Assembly (NCBI GenBank): GCA_965240325.2
Contig: OZ251239.1
Span: 1,240,001-1,304,000, forward strand
Direction: 5' to 3'
DNA: 64,000 bases
Origin: Rebecca billardiae RCC1528
Taxonomy: Eukaryota; Protista; Haptophyta
Positions 11,324 through 21,891 of the stretch are shown piece after piece. The notes beneath the pieces were generated by a model. It worked only from the letters and a program-made list of their open reading frames with translations. It was not told the DNA's origin and did no database searches. Position 1 is the stretch's first letter. Each line of letters opens with the position of its first letter. Position numbers and translations under genes: made by a program.

Positions 11324-12595
11324 TTAGCCATCCGCGTCAGCCTGGCACCGACGCCGCGCCTCCGACGCCACCATCGCCTCGAGCACCACCTCGGCGTAGC
11401 CGCACACGCGCGCCGCCTCTGCGCGCGCGACGAGCGTCGCAAAGCAGTCGGCCGGCAGCTCGGCGGCGCGCGCGAGCCGGCGCACCTCGGCGCGGAAGGC
11501 GCCGAGCCGCGCGGGCGCGTCGGGCGTGCGCGCCGCGTCGCGCGCGGCGTGCGCGAGCGCGGGCTCGTCGCCGCGCTCGAGCTGCTGCTGCAGCGCCTGC
11601 ACGTGCTGCCAGGCTGCGACGGAGCCGCCCTTGTCCGGGTGGAGCGCCGCGCACACCTTGCGCCACACGCCGCGCCGGAGCGCAAAGTACGGCCCGCGCG
11701 CGCGCGCGTACACGTCAAAGAGCCGCTCCGCGCGCGCCAGTGAGCCCTCCAGCTCGAGCGCCGCCGCCGCGGCCGCGTCGCGCGCCGCGGCCGCGTCGGC
11801 CTCTGACGCGGCGGACGCCGCGGCTGGCGGGCCCGGCGCGCCGCGCGCGCCCGACTCGGCCGTGGCCGGCGCGGCCGAGCCGGGCGCGCCGCTCCGGCTC
11901 GGCGCGAGATCGAGATCGAGATCGAGATCGAGATCGAGATCGAGCACAGGAGGCTGCGCGCGGACGGCGCGCGCGCATGCGCGCAGCCGGGGGCGGCGCG
12001 TGAGCGCGCGCGCGCGCATCGAGCCGTGCGCGAGCGCGCGCGCCCCGTGCGCGCGCCATCCGAGCGCGGCGCGCGCGGCGCCGCCCGCGTCGCGCGTGGC
12101 GCGCGCGCGCCTGCAGCCCGCACGTGAGCGCCAGGGGCGAGGGCAGCGCGCGATATTTGAGCAGCTTGGGCGAGTCCAGGACAAGGGGCAGCAGACGCTT
12201 GTCGGCCCTGTGGGGGCGTGCGGAGGGCGTGCGCGGCGCGCGCGGCGCGAGGACGCGCGTGGGGGCGGGGTCACGCGCCTCAGCCAGAAGATTCGAACGA
12301 TCACAAGGAGACGAAGCAGTGCACACAGCACAAAGCATGCAGCAGCGCACGCAGCGCATGCCATGCATGCATACGCGCGCGCGCCGCGCGGCAGCGGGCA
12401 ACAAGCGCCCGCGCGGCAACGATGGTGTGGACGTCGGCGAGGGGAGCGCGCGGGGCGTGGGCGCGCATGCGGGACGCAGCGCCGCGCGCCGGCGTGAAGG
12501 GCGGGCGCGTGCACGCCCTGGGCGGGCGGGGCGAACACAGCCGCCCCCGGCCACGCCGCGCGCCCGCGCGCGCGCGCGCGGGCGCGCGGCCGCGC

Positions 12596-12628
<33 letters not shown>

Positions 12629-15600
12629 CCTGCGGAATCGGCGGATGCAAATGAAATCGTTGCCGAAAATGCTCGCGAGCTGCTCGGCGGAGCGGCGGCG
12701 CAGGATGCCCTCCACCGAGCGGCCGAGGTAGACGGCGCACCGCCGGCCGAGCGCGGCGCGCGGCGCCTCCACCGTGCCTCCCTCCTCATCCTGTCGCGGC
12801 ACCGCACCGCACCGCGCGGCGCGGCGCGGCGCGGCGCGGCGCGGTGGCGGGGCGGTGGCGGGGCGGTGGCGGGGCGCGGTGGCGGGGCGGCGCGCGCGTT
12901 GGCGCACACTCGCGCGCGCGCGAGCGAGCGCGCACGCGGCTTGGAGCGCTGCTGCCCCTCGCGCTCGGGGGAGGGCCGCGCCGGGCCCTGCGCCCCGCGT
13001 GCGCGCGTGTGCGCCCCGCGTGCGCGCGTGTGCGCACGGCTGGCCGGGAGGGGGCAGGGCGGGGCTGGCGCTGACGCCCCGGCTGCGCGCGGGCGGCCCC
13101 GGCTGCGCTTGCGCGCGCGTGCGAACACACACGCGGCTGGCAGGCGCCGGGTGGCGCGCCGACGCATCGGTCGGTCCGGCGACGGCGCGCGCCGGCTGAG
13201 TGGGCCTCCGGCAGGCGCGCGCGCGCATAGACCAATAAAAACAAAAGTAAACCGCCCCCAAAACCCAACAAAAGAAAACAAATGCGCACGCACCTCAAAC
13301 ACTTCGTTCGAAAAGAAATACGTCCCTCGCATCGGGAAGTTGTGCTCGAACGCGGCGAATGGCGGCGTGAGGAGACGGCCGCGCACGCTGCCGCACGGCA
13401 GGGCACGCTCCTCGAGCAGGACGGCGTGCGCGGCTGCGTGCAGCGCGCGCGGCGGCGGTGTGGGCGACGAGGCGGCGCCAGGCGGCGCGGGCGGCGCGCC
13501 GGGCGGCGCGGGCCAGGCGCTCGGCACAGGCTCGGCCGCCGCGGGCGCGCCGCGTGCCTCCGCGCCCGCGGCGGCGGCGACATCGGTGCACGACGCCGGC
13601 GGCGACGCGCGAGCGTGCTGCGCCGCGGGCGGTGGCGCGGCGAGCGGCGGCGCGGGCGTGCACTCTGCCACACTCGGCGGCAGCTCCGGCGAGGCGCGCC
13701 GCACGGCCGAGCGCGCGACGAGCCAACCCCAGCGCACCACAAACAGACCGGCGCCGTCGTCGCGGCCCGCGGCGGCGGCCGACGGCTCGGCCGCGGCGCC
13801 GTCGCGCTTCGTATCTGTCGCCGCTCCGCCAGCGGCCGCGGACGTCGCCGCCGCCGGGCGCGCCGCCGCCGCCTCCACCTCAGGCACGAGCTCAATCGTC
13901 ACCGCCGCCGCCGCCGCACCGCCGCCGCCGCCTCCGCCGCCGCCGTCGTCGTCGCGGCGGGCGCGCGCCGCCGCCGGCCGGGCGGCCGGGGCGCCGGTAC
14001 TGGTGCTGGCGCCGAGCGGCGTGCTGCCCTCGGCGGCGGCCGGCGCGCCCGGCGGATCGCGCTCGGCCGCGGCCGCCGCCTCGTACGCCAGCGCGGGCGC
14101 GCGAGGCTCGACAGCCACGCCCGCGCTCGGCGGCGCCAGGGCCGCGACGGCGGCGGCGCGGCCCGGCGGCGCGGCGGCCGCGGCGGCCGCCGCGTCGCGC
14201 GCCGCCTGCCCAACCTCTGCGTTCGCCCTCGCCGCCTTCAGGTCGTGCAGGCTGGCGAGGCGGTAGTGGCAGCCGGCGGCGAGCGGGCACTCCGCGCAGC
14301 TCGGCACCTCCGCGCACAGGATCGCGCCGTGCGTGATCATCTGCACATGCGCTCGGAACAGCAGCTCCACGATCTCGAGCTCTGTGATCTCGGCGCGCGA
14401 GATTGCGGCGGCGCTCGCGGCCGTGAGTGTCTCTTCGACGAAACTCTGGGCGCGCACCGAGTAGCGCTTGAGCGCGGGGGGCACGTCCTCGATCTCGAGG
14501 GCCGAGATCGACGTCCACGGCCCGCGCAGCCGGATCGGCTGCTGCGGCGGCGGCGGCTCGGCGGACGCGGACGCGCCGCCGCCGCCGCCGCCGCCGCCGC
14601 AGCCAAAGGGCGGCGGCGCGCCGCGCGCGGGCGCGAGCGCGCCGCGCACAGGCGACTGGAGTGAAGGGTCGGGCTCGGCGGGCTGAGCGGCCGCGCTCGT
14701 CGAGGGCGCGGCGCGCGCGGCGGTGGTGCCTGCCGGCGGCGCGTGTGGCTGGGTAGCCGGGTTGGCGTTGATGGGCGCGGCGGCGTGCGCGTGCGGCGGC
14801 GGCGGCCATGCTGGCAGCTGCGCTGCGGCGCCGCCAGCCGCCGCCTCCGCCGCCGCCTCCGCGCTCGCCTCCGCGCCCGCCTCCGCGCCCGCCTCCGCGC
14901 GCGCCTCCGGCTCGGCGTCGTCGCGCGCAGAGGCCGCCCCCGACTCCGCCGCGCGCCGCGCGAGCTCGAGTCTCGTCGCGTCGCACACGTGGTACGCCCG
15001 ATGCACTCGGCAGAACAACCGCGGCGTCGCCTCGATGGCGATGCGAGCGCTTGGCGTCGCGCGACGGAACAGCTCGGAGCCGAGGTCGCTCGCGCGGGGC
15101 AGAGGCTGGGGCGGCGCGGCGGCGGCGCGGCGCGGCTCGGCCGCGTGCGGCGCGAGTATGAGCGCGCCGCACCCCGGCGGCCCCAACGCGGTGGCGACGC
15201 CGCCGCCGTGGGCCGCGGCGGCGACGACGGCAGTGGGGAGGGCGGGGGTGGCGCACGGCGCGCTGAGCGCGGCTCCTGTGACAGACATCGGCATAGGCAC
15301 CGCTGGCGACCCGCTCGGCGGCAGCGGCGCCGCCATCGAGCAGTCGCCGCCGCCAGCCGCAGCCACGAGCGCGAACGCGCCGTCGGCCGCGCCGCCGCCG
15401 AGCCCTCCCGCCGCCGCCGAGCCCGCCGCGGGCGCGCTCGGCGCAGCCGCGACCTGGCTCACCGCCGCCGCCGCCGCCGGCGCACCGCAGTGTTCGGTGG
15501 TTGGCCTGAGCGGCGCTGGCGGCGGCCGTCGGTCCGGCGGCGGTGCGTGCCGCGCGCTGGGCGGCGCGACGCGCACGCTCGCGAGCGGCACGAACGTGCA

Positions 15601-15681
15601 TGGGTCGAATGCGACAGCCCTGCCATCGCTCAGGGCCACCAGCGCCGCGGCCGGCAGCGCGGCGGCGGCAGCCATATTGTT

Positions 15682-15713
<32 letters not shown>

Positions 15714-18700
15714 GCGCCGCGGCGCGCGGCGCGCCGCCGCCGCCCGCGGGCGCGCGGGCGCGCAGCGCGGTGCACACGCGGTGTATGCACACGCTCTTGC
15801 GCGTGCCCTGCCCCCCGAAGCGTGGCTTGTCCAGGCAGCTCGCGCACTGCCCGCAGTCCGCACGCGCGCAGCCTTGGCACACGCCACACCGCGCGCGCCG
15901 CACGCGCGCGCCGCCGCCGGGCGGCGCGGCCGAAGTCATGCTCGCCTCCGGCCGGTTGTCGGCCAGGCTGCCTGCCGGGAGCGGCCCGGACACTGCGGCG
16001 GAGGCGATGCTCGGCGCCGCCGCCGCGAAGCAGCCCTCCGCCGGCCCGCCGGGCGGAGGCTGCGCCGACGGGCCGCACGGCGCGGAGGCGTCCGCGCCCG
16101 CCGCGGCCGCGGCCGCGGGCGCGGCTGCTGGTCCCTCTGGGTGACGCGCGGGCGGGTGCGCTGCGGAGGCGTGCGCCGCGGACATCGGCGTCGCAGCCGC
16201 CGCGCCGAGCGCCCCGCCATCCGAGCCCGCGCGGCCCGAGCCCGCCGCCGCCGCACGCGGCGCGGCTGCGCCGTGCTGCGCTGCCCCTGCACTGAGGCGC
16301 GCGTCGGCGCGCGCCGGCGGCGCGCCGGCGAGCTGCGCGACAGCCGCGGCCGGCGGCGCGGGGCCGGCGGCGCGCCACGCGGGCTGCACCTCGGCTCCGG
16401 GGCGAGGGTGTGGCGTGTGCAGGCCCGACCAGCCCGCGGCAGGCTCGGGCCCGACGGCGCCGCCCGGCAGCGGCGTCGCGCGTGGCGGCACCACGGCCGC
16501 TGCTTCGCGCGCCGACGCGCCCGCCGCCGCGCCGCCAGACGGCGGCGCGGCGGGCGCGCCGCGAGCGAGCGCGCAGCGCGCGGCGGGCGGCCGCGGGCTC
16601 GGCGTGCGCATGAGCACGGCCGCGGCTTGGACGGGCGCGCGCGGCGGCGAGAGCGCAGCCGAGTCCGTCTCCATCGGCGTGGGTGCTGCGCGCGCCGTCG
16701 CCGCCGCGCCCGCCGTTGCCTCGGCGGGCGGCGCGCGCGCGGCAGTCGCTGCCAGCTCAGCACTCGCCGCCGCCGCCATCACTTCCCCCGCGGCGGCCGC
16801 CGCCGTCGCCGCCGTCGCCGCCGCCACCGTTGTGTCCATGCGCTCGCCGAGCGCCCTGTCGGCTGCCGGCGCGCACGGTGGTGGCGGCGGCGGCATCGCC
16901 GCGTCCGCGTGCGCGGCGGCAGCCGGCGGGTACGCGCTCGGCGGCGACGCCGCGAGCGCCCGCGCATCCTGCGGCGCCTGCGGCGGCGGCGGCGGCGGTG
17001 GCATCAGCCGCAGCGGTGAAGGAGCGCCGCCACACGCGCCGCCGGTGGCCGCAGCGCCCGGCGGCAGCGGCAGCGCGGGCGGCTTCGGCGGCGCGACCGC
17101 GCGGGCGGGTGGCACGCGCACCGGCCCGCCCGCCCCGCCCGCGCCGCCGCCCGCCGCCCCCTTCGCCTCCCGCTCCGAGCGATGCTCGCCCTGCGCGAGC
17201 ACGCGCCGCGAGCCGCCGCCAAGCGCATCGACGGGGTCTGCGCCGATCGGAGTGAGCCAGCCGAGGCGCGTCATGACGCGGAGCACGTTGGCGTCGACGG
17301 CGAAGTCGACGCGGCGGAGGCGGTAGAGCACGAGGCACGCGATCGACTTGCGCGAGATCCCGGCGTACTGCATCAGGTACGCGCGCACCCGCGGCGTCGG
17401 CCAACTGTCGAGCGCCTCCAGACACGTTCTGCCCATGGTTGCGTGCACGCCTTTTAGAAACGCGAGAATGCGCTCGGCCTTGATGTGAAAGTACGGGCCG
17501 TGGCAGATGAGCGGCTCGATGTCCGCGGGCGCGCACCGGCGCACCGCGTCCCAGTCCGGCTCGCGCGCGCGCGGCGCCACGCTCAGCGACAGCCGCACCC
17601 GCCCGCCGCGCTCGACGCGCACGGCCGCGCGCGCGGCCGCACTCGGCGGGAAGGCGGCGTAAAAATTCGCATACGAAACGGAAGACCACGAGTTTCTGGT
17701 GTTCTGCGCGCAGATGAGCCCGATCAGCGTGCCGATCACCGAGGTGTGCCACGGGCGCGAGATGTGCGCGAGCGGGCCGTACACGCGGTCGAGCGCCGCC
17801 GAGAACGCGCGGAACGTGCCGAGCGCGTTCGCCGCGCTCAGCGCGCCATCGGGTCGCGCGCTCGCCAGCGCAGCCGTCTCGGCGCGCAGCGCTCGGAAGG
17901 CACCGCGGTGGTCGATGCGCGCGGGGCGGGAGGGGGCGGCGGCGGAGGCGGGGCCGACGCGCATCGGGAGCGGCGTCGCGCTGCCCAGCGCGCGAGCCAG
18001 CGCGCCGGCGAGCACCACCGCCATGCCGCCCGACCCGGCGCCGGCCGTGCCGTCGGCGCCGTCGGCGGCGCCGCGGCCGCGCGCGCCCGCTGCCGCGACG
18101 ATTAGCGCTCGCGACGACGGCGGCGGAGGCGCCGCCGCCGCGGCCGGCGCCGCGGCCGGCTCCGGCGGCGTGCTCGCTCCGCCCGCAAGCGCCTCGGCGA
18201 GGGCGGCGGGGGCGGCCGGCGGCGGCATGGCGGCGTCGACGGGCCCCGCCGACGCCGCGTGCCGCCCCGCGCCGTGCGCCGCTCCGAGCGGCGAGGCCGC
18301 AGCCGCCGCCGCGCGCGCCTCGGCCGCGCCGCGCGCGTCGTGGGCCGCGGGCGGCGGCTGAGGCGGCGGCGGCGGCGGCGGTGCGGGGACGGCGCGCGCG
18401 CGGACGCGCAGGCGGACGCGTGGCAGCGCGCGCGGCGCGCGCGCGCCCACGGGCTCCCCCTGCGCCACCGAGCCCGCGCGTGCGCCCGCCGAGCCATCGG
18501 CGGCGGCGGCGCCCGCACCGCTCGCAACGGCAAGCTCCGCGCAACACGGCTGCTGCCGCCGCCACGCCGCGTGCGCGGTGCGCACGTGCGCGCGCCACCG
18601 CTCGGGCGCGACGGCGCCGAGCGCGCGGCCCGACGCATCGACCTCGAAGAGCGCGTCGAGCCGGAGGCCGAGCAGCCGCTCCCACCCGAGATTGCTCGAG

Positions 18701-20886
18701 GGCGCGCCGATCTCCCCGCCGAGATTGCTCGAGGGCGCGCCGATCTCCCCGCCGAGATTGCTCAAGGGCGCGCCGATCTCGGCGCCGAGATCGGCCGAGC
18801 GCGCCCAATCCGCACTCGCCTGCGCGGCTCCAGCGCGCGCGCCGGTGGCGGCCGCGGCGGAGGGCGGCGCCAGCTGTGGCGCCGAGGGCCCCGCGCCATC
18901 CGCCGGCGGATCCGACGCCTCGGTGGCCGCGTGCGCCCCGGCGGCGGCCCGCGCCCCGACCGCGCATGCCGCAGCGCCGGGCGGCCGCGCGCCGCCCAGT
19001 CCCAGCCCGTCTCCGCCGCCCTGCTTGGCGCCGTGCCTGGGGCGCGCGCGCGCGCGCGGCGAGGGCTCGCCGCCGGCGAGCGCGAGCAGCGCCGGCAGCC
19101 GGCGGCGCTTGATCGGCCGACCGGCCGCGGAGTGCGCGCCGCTCCAGCCGCACGCGCCGCCGGCCGCCGCGCCGCCGCCGGCCGCCGCGCCGGTCGGGGC
19201 CTCATTCGCCTCCGCCTCCTCCGCCTCCGCCTCACACAGCGGGCAGGCGTAGGCGTGCGCGCTGCGGCCGAGGGCGGCGAGCTCGGCCGGGCCGAGGCCC
19301 GCGCACAGCGCGTGCACCCACAGCTCGCAACGGTCGCAGCACACCATCGCCCAGTCCTCCTCCGCACACGCTGTCGAGTTGGCGGCGGCGGCGGCGGCGG
19401 CGGCAGAACCTGCCGCGTCGGCGGCGGCTGCGGCGGCGGCTGCGGCGGCGGCGGCGGCGGCGGGCTGCGTGGACGGCGGCGATGGCGGCGCTGAGCGGGC
19501 GCAGCCGGCCGCGCGCGCGGTGCCGGCGTGCGCAGCCGCTGCGCCCGCCCCTGCGCCCGCGCCCGCCGCCGCCGCCGCCGCCTCGGCGCCTCCGCCGGTA
19601 CGCACCCCAGGCAGTGCCCACAGCTCCAGGCAGACGGGGCAGTACTCGCGCGCGCGCCACCGGGCGGCGCACGGCGCGCACGCGTGGATCAGGCCGCGGC
19701 CGGGCACCGTGCACGGCTGCACGCGGCACGCGGGCGGCTGCGCGCCGCCATTCGCCCGCCGCGCCTCCGCGACGCCGGCACCGCCGCCGCCACCGCCGCC
19801 GCCGCACGATTCGCACGCGCGGCCGGGCGGCGCGCGCGCAGGGTCACACGCGGGGCAAAGGTATTCGGTGCCGCCCTCGAGGCGCACGAGGGCGGCGGCG
19901 TCGAGCCCGTCGCACGCCGCGTGCACCCACATCGCACACCCGTCGCAGCACGCCATCTCCACCGAGTCCGGCGCCCACGCCGCCGCGCACACCGGACAGT
20001 ACGCCCCGGCCGCGTGCGCGCGCGCGCACGACTCGCACAGCAGCAGCCGCCCGTGGTCCGGCACCGCGGCGGGGCGCAGCCCGACGGCGGCGTGGGGCGA
20101 GCGCGGGGGGCAGACGGCGCAGCGCCGCGCGCGGCGTTTGGCGCTCGCGCCCGTCGCCGCGCTCGATGCGCCGCGCTTGCACGCGCCCTTGCTCTCCGCA
20201 GCCGCGGCCGGCGGCGGCGCCGCCGTCCTGGGCGGCGCGCGTGACGCAGCGGCGCCGACGCGCGCGCGCGCGGCGCCGGCAGAGGCCGAGGACGGCGCCT
20301 CGGCTGCGCGCGGGCGTGCGGCCGCGCGGGGCCCGTCGGCGCGCGCATCGCCGCGCCGTGCGCCTCCGATGCGCCCACCACGCGCGTGAGCGGGCCCGGC
20401 CTTCTCCGCGGCGGCGGCGGCCGCGCTCAGAGCCGCCCGCCAGCGCTCGGCTTGCAGCGCCACTCGCGCGACCTTGCCGTCGTCAAACTTGATCGTGCGC
20501 CGCGCGCGGGCGGCGTGCTGGGCGGGGTCGCCCGGCGGCGCGTCGAGCACCACGCCGGCGAGCCAGCCGCGCGGCTCCCCGCGCCAGACTTGAATGCGAG
20601 CGCCAAGACTCGGCTGCTCGCGCGCGCCGCCGCCGGCCGACGCGCGCCGCGTGGCAGCCTGGAGCTGCGGGGCGATGGGGTCGGCGGTCTCGGCGTCGGA
20701 AAACTTGCGCGGGGCGTGCCGCGCGCGAGGCGGCCGAGGCGCCGCGCTGCTTCGGAGCAGGCGCATGGGCACGCGGCGGGGTCGTGAGTCGATGACGATG
20801 GACGGCTGAGCCCGGGGAAAGACGGGCCCGAGCTTGCGGGCCGAGCCTTTTGCGGTGACGGCCGGGCGCGAAAGCCCTGCACGCAT
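11324..20886 (-). CDS. DEMETER/ROS1-like 5-methylcytosine DNA glycosylase/lyase with Tudor, two PHD, CXXC, HhH-GPD, 4Fe-4S and DME-type RRM domains, and a probable C-terminal J-like domain
   Basis: HhH-GPD (SVIGTLIGLICAQNT...GISRKSIACLVLYRLRRVDFAVDANVLRVMTRLGW) with catalytic K (17347-9) and D (17293-5). FeS motif CAEVPSCAECPLAAGC at 14269-14316. DME RRM VRGRLLTPPFAAFEHNFPMRGTYFFSNEVFE|DEE..AVYLGRSVEGIL..FICIRRFRR|ADKRLLPL across GT-AG introns 12791-13293 and 12208-12629. The last exon (11324-11953, HPDKGG) needs a GC-AG intron at 11954-12110, which is less certain. Start is 20886 or 20766. Confidence 0.88.
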
Positions 20887-21201
20887 CAGGTACGTGAGTC
20901 GCCCGGTCGGACGAAACTTGGTGACGACCGGAGTGCTGGACTACCGCCTTTGGCCGGACCGCCTCACCTTTTGTCGCTGCAGACCGCCTGCAGTGCAGAG
21001 CCGCACCGTGTACGCCCGTCTCACAGTATGATCGTCAGCAACGCGACAGCGACAGCGTTGGCCATTGATTCCAAGGGCGTTGAGCTCAGTGGCAGCTGCC
21101 TGCCGCAGCTCGGGGGCTCGGGGCTGGGCGAGACCGACGGATCGGTCAGCTATGCCTTCCGTCGTCGGACTTGGCGCGCCGCGCTGTGCGTGCGCAGCGA
21201 C

Positions 21202-21891
21202 TCAGACGCCGCGCTTCTGCCGCTTTGCACGAGGCTGCTCCGCCTCGGGCTCAGCAGCCTTGTCGTCGTCGTCGTCGTCGCCACCGCCGTCACCGCTGCC
21301 ATCGTCGTCGTCGTCGTCGCTGCCGTCGCTGTCGTCGTCGCTGTCCTCCTCGTCGTCGCTGCCCTCCTCCTCCTCCTCGTCGTCGTCGTCGTCTCCCTCG
21401 GTCGCGTCGCCTTCCTCCTCGCCCTCCTCATCGCTCTCCTCCTCGCCCTCGTCCTCCTCCTCGCCCTCGTCCTCCTCCGCCTCCTCCTCCTCGTCCGCCT
21501 CCGGCTCAGGCCGGCCATCTGCTACCCACTTCTCATAGTCCTTGAGCGGCAGCGGCTCGGGCGTGCCCACGGCGTCATCGGCGGTGCGCACGAGCACCAC
21601 GTCGCCCTTGATCGCCGCCTCGAACGAGCTCTCGGGCAGCGTGTGCCGGTTGCGCTTCCCCGTCGCGCCGTCCTTGCCGACCGCCTGCACGTTGAGGGCG
21701 CGGATGGCGCCCACGACCGTCGGCGTGCCCTTGAGCAGCTCGCACACGTTGCGGTGGTCGATCGAGACCTCGGTGCAGGTGCCGTCGGCCTTGAGGACTA
21801 CGGCGAGGACCGCGGCCGACGGCTTCGACATGACCGCGGTGGCGAGCGCCTGCGCGGCGACGTTTGCCGGTGCACCCCGCGTCTTGGCCAT
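21202..21891 (-). CDS. Small globular domain (DUF5880-like) with a long acidic tail and basic C-terminal NLS; histone-chaperone-like architecture
   Basis: Clean 229-aa ORF: AVVLKADG..NRHTLPESSFEAAIKGDVVLVRT..LKDYEKW, then about 80 aa rich in D/E and AKRQKR. Family assignment is from memory of the motif only. Confidence 0.65.
   Translation of the reverse strand: MAKTRGAPANVAAQALATAVMSKPSAAVLAVVLKADGTCTEVSIDHRNVCELLKGTPTVVGAIRALNVQAVGKDGATGKRNRHTLPESSFEAAIKGDVVLVRTADDAVGTPEPLPLKDYEKWVADGRPEPEADEEEEAEEDEGEEEDEGEEESDEEGEEEGDATEGDDDDDEEEEEGSDDEEDSDDDSDGSDDDDDDGSGDGGGDDDDDDKAAEPEAEQPRAKRQKRGV

Follow-up and report, generated by a model that had tools for sequence, protein, structure and literature searches.

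In plants, the targeting of DEMETER/ROS1 enzymes is incompletely understood: trimethylation of lysine 4 on histone H3 (H3K4me3) promotes ROS1-family demethylation in Arabidopsis, and a 2025 study left the regulation unsettled (PMC11842272). According to a 2023 review (PMC9861306), the family is confined to plants and green algae. Citing Iyer et al. 2011, Zhang et al. 2019 (PMC6717269, section 9, Fig. 5) described DEMETER (DME) homologues from chlorophytes and stramenopiles that carry classical CXXC fingers at distinct positions as well as Tudor, PHD, AT-hook, and DnaJ domains, and proposed that these proteins are regulated by methylation status and chromatin state. The present analysis concerns a gene of this type in the haptophyte Rebecca billardiae RCC1528, located on the minus strand at 11324-20886 of a 64-kb window (the whole stretch of DNA analyzed; positions 1,240,001 to 1,304,000 of contig OZ251239.1) within a 72-Mb, 41-contig assembly (GCA_965240325.2). 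On balance, the gene is considered probably to encode a DEMETER/ROS1-type bifunctional glycosylase/lyase of ~2,800 residues that would excise 5-methylcytosine (5mC) under the guidance of its own chromatin-reading modules, possibly with Hsp70-assisted turnover. All coordinates below are those of the window, and all of the gene's features lie on the minus strand.

A Haptophyte Member of the DEMETER/ROS1 Family

Membership in the DEMETER/ROS1 family is well supported by the predicted protein. The HhH-GPD segment (17248-17760) ends in RLGWLTP, contains the plug Gln (ROS1 Q607) in the motif CAQN, and places Lys1180 (codon 17349-17347) and Asp1198 (codon 17295-17293) 18 residues apart, where they align to the catalytic pair of ROS1; the Asp is marked by a ROS1 chain carrying the D-to-N change. 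The Pfam HhH-GPD match is weak (residues 1056-1213). The best solved match to this segment is Arabidopsis ROS1 (7YHQ; 55.3 bits, 7e-14), with endonuclease III (Nth) next (31.5 bits, 1.3e-6). A second glycosylase segment (14269-14499) contains the [4Fe-4S] loop (14316-14269; C-X5-C-X2-C-X5-C), a MutY/Nth-like iron-sulfur segment at about residues 2182-2207 whose four-Cys sequence, CAEVPSCAECPLAAGC, aligns to the loop of ROS1. Past the insert that separates the two segments, the region from the iron-sulfur loop into the first part of the C-terminal domain has a solved match in ROS1 alone (1e-5). The C-terminal domain characteristic of the family is split by introns, with RRM_DME positions 1-29 at 13294-13392 (residues 2503-2531, 15.6 bits, ending ...GTYFFSNEVFE at the exon 1 donor) and positions 49-87 in exon 2 (25.9 bits). 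Added up roughly, the two pieces pass the 34.6-bit cut-off. Relatives in which the domain is intact score 49-53 bits, and a profile search of the 72-Mb genome found this as its sole RRM_DME locus.

An earlier reading of the window, made from the sequence alone, had assigned the gene to this family on the basis of an HhH-GPD domain with catalytic Lys and Asp, an iron-sulfur motif, and the C-terminal RRM, and the assignment holds, with ROS1 as the best solved match in addition. That sequence-only reading had also named grouping of the core with Nth as a result that would speak against it; among solved structures, the match scores place ROS1 (7e-14) ahead of endonuclease III (1.3e-6). The domains that it listed were all recovered close to where it had put them, in one minus-strand frame (20886-13294), and the RRM does continue across two GT-AG introns (503 and 422 nt), as it had proposed.

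The nearest named homologue of the protein is EMIHUDRAFT_451890 (P0001) from Emiliania huxleyi, likewise a haptophyte and thus outside green plants. Five relatives (P0001-P0005) preserve the order of HhH segment, RLGWL motif, insert, iron-sulfur loop, and C-terminal domain, and the relatives encode PHD, HhH, CXXC, the C-terminal domain, and the J tail in single proteins. The fusion of reader modules to the glycosylase in one frame, another claim of the sequence-only reading, is therefore borne out by an arrangement conserved in relatives. For P0004, a 2513-residue open reading frame (ORF; 7.5 kb) runs uninterrupted on 100% identical Logan contigs of 7.6-7.8 kb from two independent runs (SRR22185023 and SRR15181881), both of which begin 10-13 nt ahead of the ATG. 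These contigs fit full-length transcript assemblies, so that one mRNA joining all modules is possible in this relative.

Accessory Domains

Two PHD fingers precede the glycosylase core, each accompanied by a Cys-pair knuckle (PHD1 at 19843-20121, core 20001-19843; PHD2 at 19231-19728, core 19644-19231). Both had been proposed from the sequence alone, and the cut-out piece matches the Pfam PHD model in two stretches at 44.5 bits against a cut-off of 24, with the Cys4-His-Cys3 signature. In PHD2, ~95 Ala-rich low-complexity residues occupy the loop separating zinc-binding pairs one and two. The nearest solved structures to PHD1 are the fingers of DIDO1, MLL1 PHD3, MLL5, an Arabidopsis Alfin-type protein, and BPTF (best E 2.8e-6), all of which are readers of H3K4me3. 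A Trp two residues ahead of the zinc-binding His and a Tyr ahead of the first Cys are kept in both PHD1 and PHD2, positions that form the H3K4me3 cage in BPTF and ING2. Recognition of H3K4me3 by the PHD fingers is accordingly offered as a lead.

The two halves of the glycosylase are separated by a low-complexity insert of 916 residues (14500-17247; 31% Ala, 16% Pro, 12% Gly), which lies between RLGWLTP and the helix preceding the iron-sulfur loop. At its middle is a canonical CXXC zinc finger (15772-15906) with two CGxCxxC clusters and RFGG; the zf-CXXC match at residues 1661-1705 scores 42.3 bits (cut-off 26.5) with all eight Cys present, in agreement with the CXXC domain claimed earlier. All five relatives carry an insert at the same site, which makes it a conserved trait of the clade, and in four of the five the insert contains a CXXC finger. 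The permuted CXXC of streptophyte-type DME is absent from the 292-residue linker that joins the iron-sulfur loop to the C-terminal domain, where only 3 Cys occur, and this absence fits the algal DME type (PMC6717269).

The earlier domain list stood as far as it went but overlooked a J-like domain that ends the gene at 11324. This domain (11564-11725) lies in the last exon and contains an HPDKGG motif at 11644-11624; HPD(K/R)GG is invariant in five tails (the window and four relatives). In a PDB search with a profile built from the five tails, the five best matches were all J domains, those of TIM14 and of polyomavirus T antigens (E 0.012-0.4), and 92 of 100 matches in a language-model search with the tail were DnaJ clusters (best score 0.92). 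A J domain at the C-terminus is thus likely.

At the N-terminus, the segment at 20425-20619 is a Tudor-fold domain of the type found in PDS5C/RDM15 (PTM/DIR17); it has 7 residues inserted in a loop, and its aromatic cage is degenerate. The segment gave little on its own: a word search returned no match at E up to 1, a single-sequence AlphaFold2 (AF2) model was uninformative (pLDDT 55), a direct PDB search found only 7DE9 (E 0.64), and a language-model search pointed at Tudor families at the level of a lead. The sole Pfam match, TibC_1st (E 0.21), is unrelated. A full-library HMMER search returned eight matches, half of which are Tudor proteins aligned over their own Tudor domains (P0007, 1.5e-8; P0008, 8.5e-7; P0011, 1.4e-4; P0013, 6e-4). 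The other four were discarded, three of them (P0006, P0009, and P0010) as bacterial repeat proteins, which owe their scores to numerous weak repeat matches added together, and the last (P0012) as a protein without a Pfam family and with a strongly biased score. With a profile made from the window Tudor and the matched segments, the best match is the RDM15/PDS5C Tudor 7DE9 (3e-17), ahead of the Tudors of 53BP1 and LBR, and an AF2 model with the alignment forms a five-strand barrel (pLDDT 82.6) whose best Foldseek match is again 7DE9 (E 7e-4, TM 0.68/0.75). The fold of the Tudor-like domain seen in the sequence-only reading is supported by this profile and this model, but its function as a reader is not, as discussed below. 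A Tudor domain was seen in none of the five relatives.

Three tandem 11-residue units of the form EIGAP(L/S)SNLGG were observed in the stretch that separates PHD2 from the glycosylase core (18680-18780, minus strand).

Proposed Mechanism and Identity of the Substrate

A substrate for an enzyme acting on 5mC is suggested by the methyltransferase genes of the assembly. A DNMT5-type frame on the minus strand (G000:C18:777000-783837, 2279 codons) encodes a C5 methylase with an SNF2-related domain after it, and a further three PF00145 loci score well above the cut-off (C8:3087977-3088969, C12:1436287-1437594, and C11:484665-485171). The sequence-only reading had held that a genome without DNMTs would count against it, and this genome contains these four loci.

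According to the mechanism favored here, the core would flip out and excise 5mC, or a close derivative, from CG sites whose methylation would be laid down by the DNMT5-type and other C5 methyltransferases of the genome, after which base-excision repair would restore cytosine. The accessory modules would set where and for how long the enzyme acts. The two PHD fingers, being of the H3K4me3-reader class, would dock the enzyme on active-promoter nucleosomes, and the CXXC finger, carried on the long disordered insert, would bind nearby unmethylated CpG. The J domain would recruit Hsp70, which might release or remodel enzyme tightly bound to its product, and the Tudor domain, with its cage degenerate, would probably make another contact. 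If the fusion works in this way, chromatin state would be coupled directly to base excision.

Several observations weigh against this mechanism, beginning with the active site. In ROS1, the mutants R903A and M905G lose 5mC:G activity, while T606L and D611V are inactive (PMC3794587). In the window and in all five relatives, R903 is replaced by Gly, M905 by Tyr, T606 by Ala, and D611 by Asn; the wedge loop of the clade reads HGPY(F/Y)H against SRGMNH in ROS1; and the first two Cys of the iron-sulfur loop are separated by X5 throughout, against X6 in ROS1. Among the accessory modules, the CXXC finger of the window has K-S at the (K/R)-Q of the relatives, the Pfam DnaJ model has no match on the C-terminal tail, and Pfam finds no Tudor family in the isolated Tudor segment at E up to 10. 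RDM15 reads H3K4me1 (monomethylated H3K4) via W616, Y623, and Y641 together with D643 and D645, while E647 and Q654 hold H3R2 (PMC8184781); in the window, these seven positions are occupied by R, L, F, D, K, A, and E, respectively, such that the cage retains one aromatic out of three (W616 is R and Y623 is L) and two further peptide contacts (D645 to K, E647 to A) are lost. With two cage aromatics gone, canonical methyl-lysine reading by the Tudor domain is unlikely, as is the reading of H3K4me1 by the mechanism of RDM15. Finally, the mechanism presupposes a single transcript and an exon 1 free of hidden in-frame introns, both of which are predicted from the genomic sequence.

The altered wedge and pocket residues are a clade-wide trait rather than a sign of decay, and they would be compatible with another substrate or with a base pair that is interrogated in another manner. 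Because the clade differs from ROS1 at the residues on which 5mC:G activity depends, the excision of 5mC is something that we infer, and of the earlier claim of active 5mC demethylation it is the family and the fused readers that stand, whereas the substrate can only be stated conditionally. The most credible alternative, although rather unlikely in our estimate, is that the architecture is right but the main substrate is not 5mC:G, in which case the protein would be a chromatin-guided repair glycosylase for some other pyrimidine lesion or modified base, e.g., thymine or uracil opposite guanine at CpG, oxidized 5mC derivatives, or, as in endonuclease III, oxidized pyrimidines. The four replacements listed above speak for such a shift. 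An Ala ahead of the plug Gln is also found in E. coli Nth, which points in the same direction. Reader-guided repair has precedents as well, since a Tudor domain is fused to plant MSH6 and PDS5C (10.1101/2022.05.28.493846). On the other side, the C-terminal domain, which helps form the 5mC base pocket in ROS1 (PMC7617993), is kept and conserved here. The plug Gln is likewise retained, and the genome contains several C5 methyltransferase genes. A Tyr wedge, moreover, is workable in other HhH glycosylases (MutY and OGG1), which counts against reading the changed wedge as a change of substrate.

Excision of 5mC thus remains the favored reading, and a fuller and more speculative version of it can be put forward, though taken as a whole it is unlikely, somewhat more so than a change of substrate. 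In this version, the haptophyte DEMETER clade would constitute a self-contained eraser opposing DNMT5-type CG methylation, in which the PHD fingers would sit on H3K4-methylated nucleosomes, the CXXC finger within the fold would gate catalysis by sensing a neighboring unmethylated CpG, and the T-antigen-like J domain would, together with Hsp70, pull a slow glycosylase off its abasic product. To our knowledge, an Hsp70-driven recycling step has not been described for any DNA glycosylase.

Gene Model

The GC content of the window ranges from 58-83% per 2 kb and is ~80% across the gene region. First-order Markov simulations of the region produced open frames with a mean of 851 codons and a maximum of 2254, and ORF length is therefore weak evidence for a gene. 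The gene call is made instead because eight conserved blocks are colinear in one frame, because homologues exist, and because the signal of third-position GC content (GC3) is present over the folded parts. On these grounds the gene is confirmed as genuine, with a predicted structure that rests on homology.

The whole gene extends from the ATG at 20886, the earliest past an in-frame TAG (20941-20943), to the TAA at 11324-11326, and the predicted protein has ~2,780-2,860 residues, the spread being set by the placement of intron 3. The open frame as listed on the minus strand (20886 to 12301, 2861 codons) overruns the first exon, as ~330 of its codons read through introns 1 and 2 without a stop; exon 1 itself (13294-20886) comprises 2531 codons and carries, in a single frame, everything from the Tudor domain through the start of the C-terminal domain. 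Its product is 29% Ala, 12% Pro, and 11% Gly. GC3 is highest in the coding frame along most of exon 1 and the signal holds across the folded domains, while the peak is lost in two stretches (about aa 171-230 and 441-470).

The 3' gene structure, meaning the end of exon 1, introns 1 and 2, and the start of exon 3, was set by homologue alignment. Intron 1 (12791-13293, 503 nt, GTGCGT...ACAG) is followed by exon 2 (12630-12790), which encodes the central part of the C-terminal domain, and by intron 2 (12208-12629, 422 nt, GTGCTG...ACAG). The start of exon 3 (12110-12207) encodes the conserved motif RLLPLVLDSPKLLKY...ALTCGL, which opens the exon at 12207. The final coding block, which stops at the terminal TAA, is in a different frame from exon 3, and at least one further intron must therefore be present. 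With GC donors allowed, 136 donor/acceptor pairs would keep the frame, and few do so with GT donors only; the preferred pair (exon end 11948, next start 11823), which would drop (GATCTC)6 and yield a protein of 2,837 residues, is a guess. Two microsatellites, (GATCTC)6 at 11906-11941 and (TGC)11 at 12596-12628 (minus strand), both lie in presumed 3' introns, the latter in intron 2. Introns in this genome can remain stop-free for hundreds of codons, and ORF-based gene calls over-extend as a result.

A wrong gene model would change the picture, either because the readers and the glycosylase belong to separate units or because parts of exon 1 are stop-free in-frame introns and the protein is shorter. 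Such an error seems very unlikely, although the ~330 codons that remain open through two real introns, the simulated frames of up to 2254 codons, and the two stretches that lose the GC3 peak speak for it, as does the PHD2 loop, which opens with GTGCGT, the donor hexamer of intron 1. The ~95-residue Ala-rich loop is indeed the likeliest spot for a hidden exon 1 intron. The obvious candidate there, running 235 nt from GTGCGT to the nearest ACAG, was rejected, as it breaks the frame and destroys the finger; a 141-nt in-frame alternative is also allowed by the loop. The eight conserved blocks, however, share the same frame over 7.6 kb with no in-frame stop at which a separate gene upstream might end, the relatives carry the modules in single proteins, and P0004 is found on transcript-like contigs from two runs.

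Decay of the locus into a silent relic, its low-complexity expansion reflecting relaxed constraint, is the least probable explanation of all, since the 29% Ala, the 916-residue insert, the degenerate cage of the Tudor domain, 24 residues inserted in the glycosylase core of the window alone, and the 3' microsatellites that might suggest it stand against an absence of any stop or frameshift in the 2531 codons or the later exons, canonical splice sites, a GC3 signal over the folded domains, and the intactness of the catalytic Lys and Asp, the HPD motif, the four Cys of the iron-sulfur loop, and every Cys of the CXXC finger.

Just upstream of the gene, a separate ORF of 229 residues (21202-21891, minus strand) has an extremely acidic, Asp/Glu-rich C-terminal half.

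Comparison with Known Systems

The protein shares with the solved ROS1/DEMETER structures (7YHO-7YHQ) the Lys/Asp pair 18 residues apart, the plug Gln, the [4Fe-4S] loop, and the family C-terminal domain, and resembles these enzymes further in its long disordered linkers inside and past the glycosylase domain. It differs from them in adding an N-terminal Tudor domain, two PHD fingers, and a C-terminal J-like domain, and in lacking DemeN and a Lys-rich N-terminus; relative to ROS1, the wedge loop and two pocket residues are changed and the first two Cys of the iron-sulfur loop stand one residue closer together. The position of the disordered sequence also differs. ROS1 runs from RLGW(V)P directly into the helix before the iron-sulfur loop, where the window has its 916 residues, whereas only ~27 residues are found at the position of plant IDR1, such that the large insert is placed elsewhere, after RLGWL, and carries a classical CXXC. 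Nth has the same HhH-GPD and iron-sulfur fold and the same Lys/Asp chemistry, and forms the second-best group of solved matches, but is without the C-terminal DME domain, the inserts, and the reader modules. The closest fold and sequence relatives of the Tudor domain are the Tudors of PDS5C/RDM15 and plant MSH6, readers of H3K4me1 that are likewise joined to a chromatin or repair protein; compared with PDS5C/RDM15, the window has Arg at W616, Leu at Y623, Lys at D645, and Ala at E647.

Within the clade, P0001-P0005 show 49% identity in the glycosylase core and have the same RLGWL-insert-FCL layout, C-X5-C spacing, and C-terminal domain as the window. In P0001-P0004, the four relatives whose C-termini are complete, the 'RLLPLVLD.P.LLK' motif and the HPD(K/R)GG tail are retained as well. 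The N-terminal modules, in contrast, are swapped among these proteins (e.g., a GNAT-like, or acetyltransferase, segment in P0001 and P0004 and an FHA domain with a second CXXC in P0005), P0001 shows no CXXC, and none of the relatives is as long or as rich in Ala as the window protein.

The algal DME homologues already described (PMC6717269) have the same accessory set and follow the same logic, with CXXC reporting methylation status and PHD and Tudor domains reporting chromatin state. The concept of a self-targeting demethylase put forward in the sequence-only reading had thus already been printed, even though the fusion that it predicted outside green plants was found. The fusion type is known from sequence analysis in other algae, and the value of the present locus is in an anchored gene model and in specific testable residues, not in a new principle. 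The 2019 text names chlorophyte and stramenopile algae and does not contain the word 'haptophyte'; this locus extends the family to haptophytes, a group of ecological importance in which methylation is of the DNMT5 type, and adds the exact site of CXXC insertion in the fold, the wedge and pocket residues particular to the clade, and the degenerate cage of the Tudor domain. The protein, which combines in cis PHD fingers of the H3K4me3 type, a CXXC finger expected to read CpG, and a likely J domain, offers a natural experiment in which the modules that may direct a DEMETER/ROS1 enzyme can be separated from one another.

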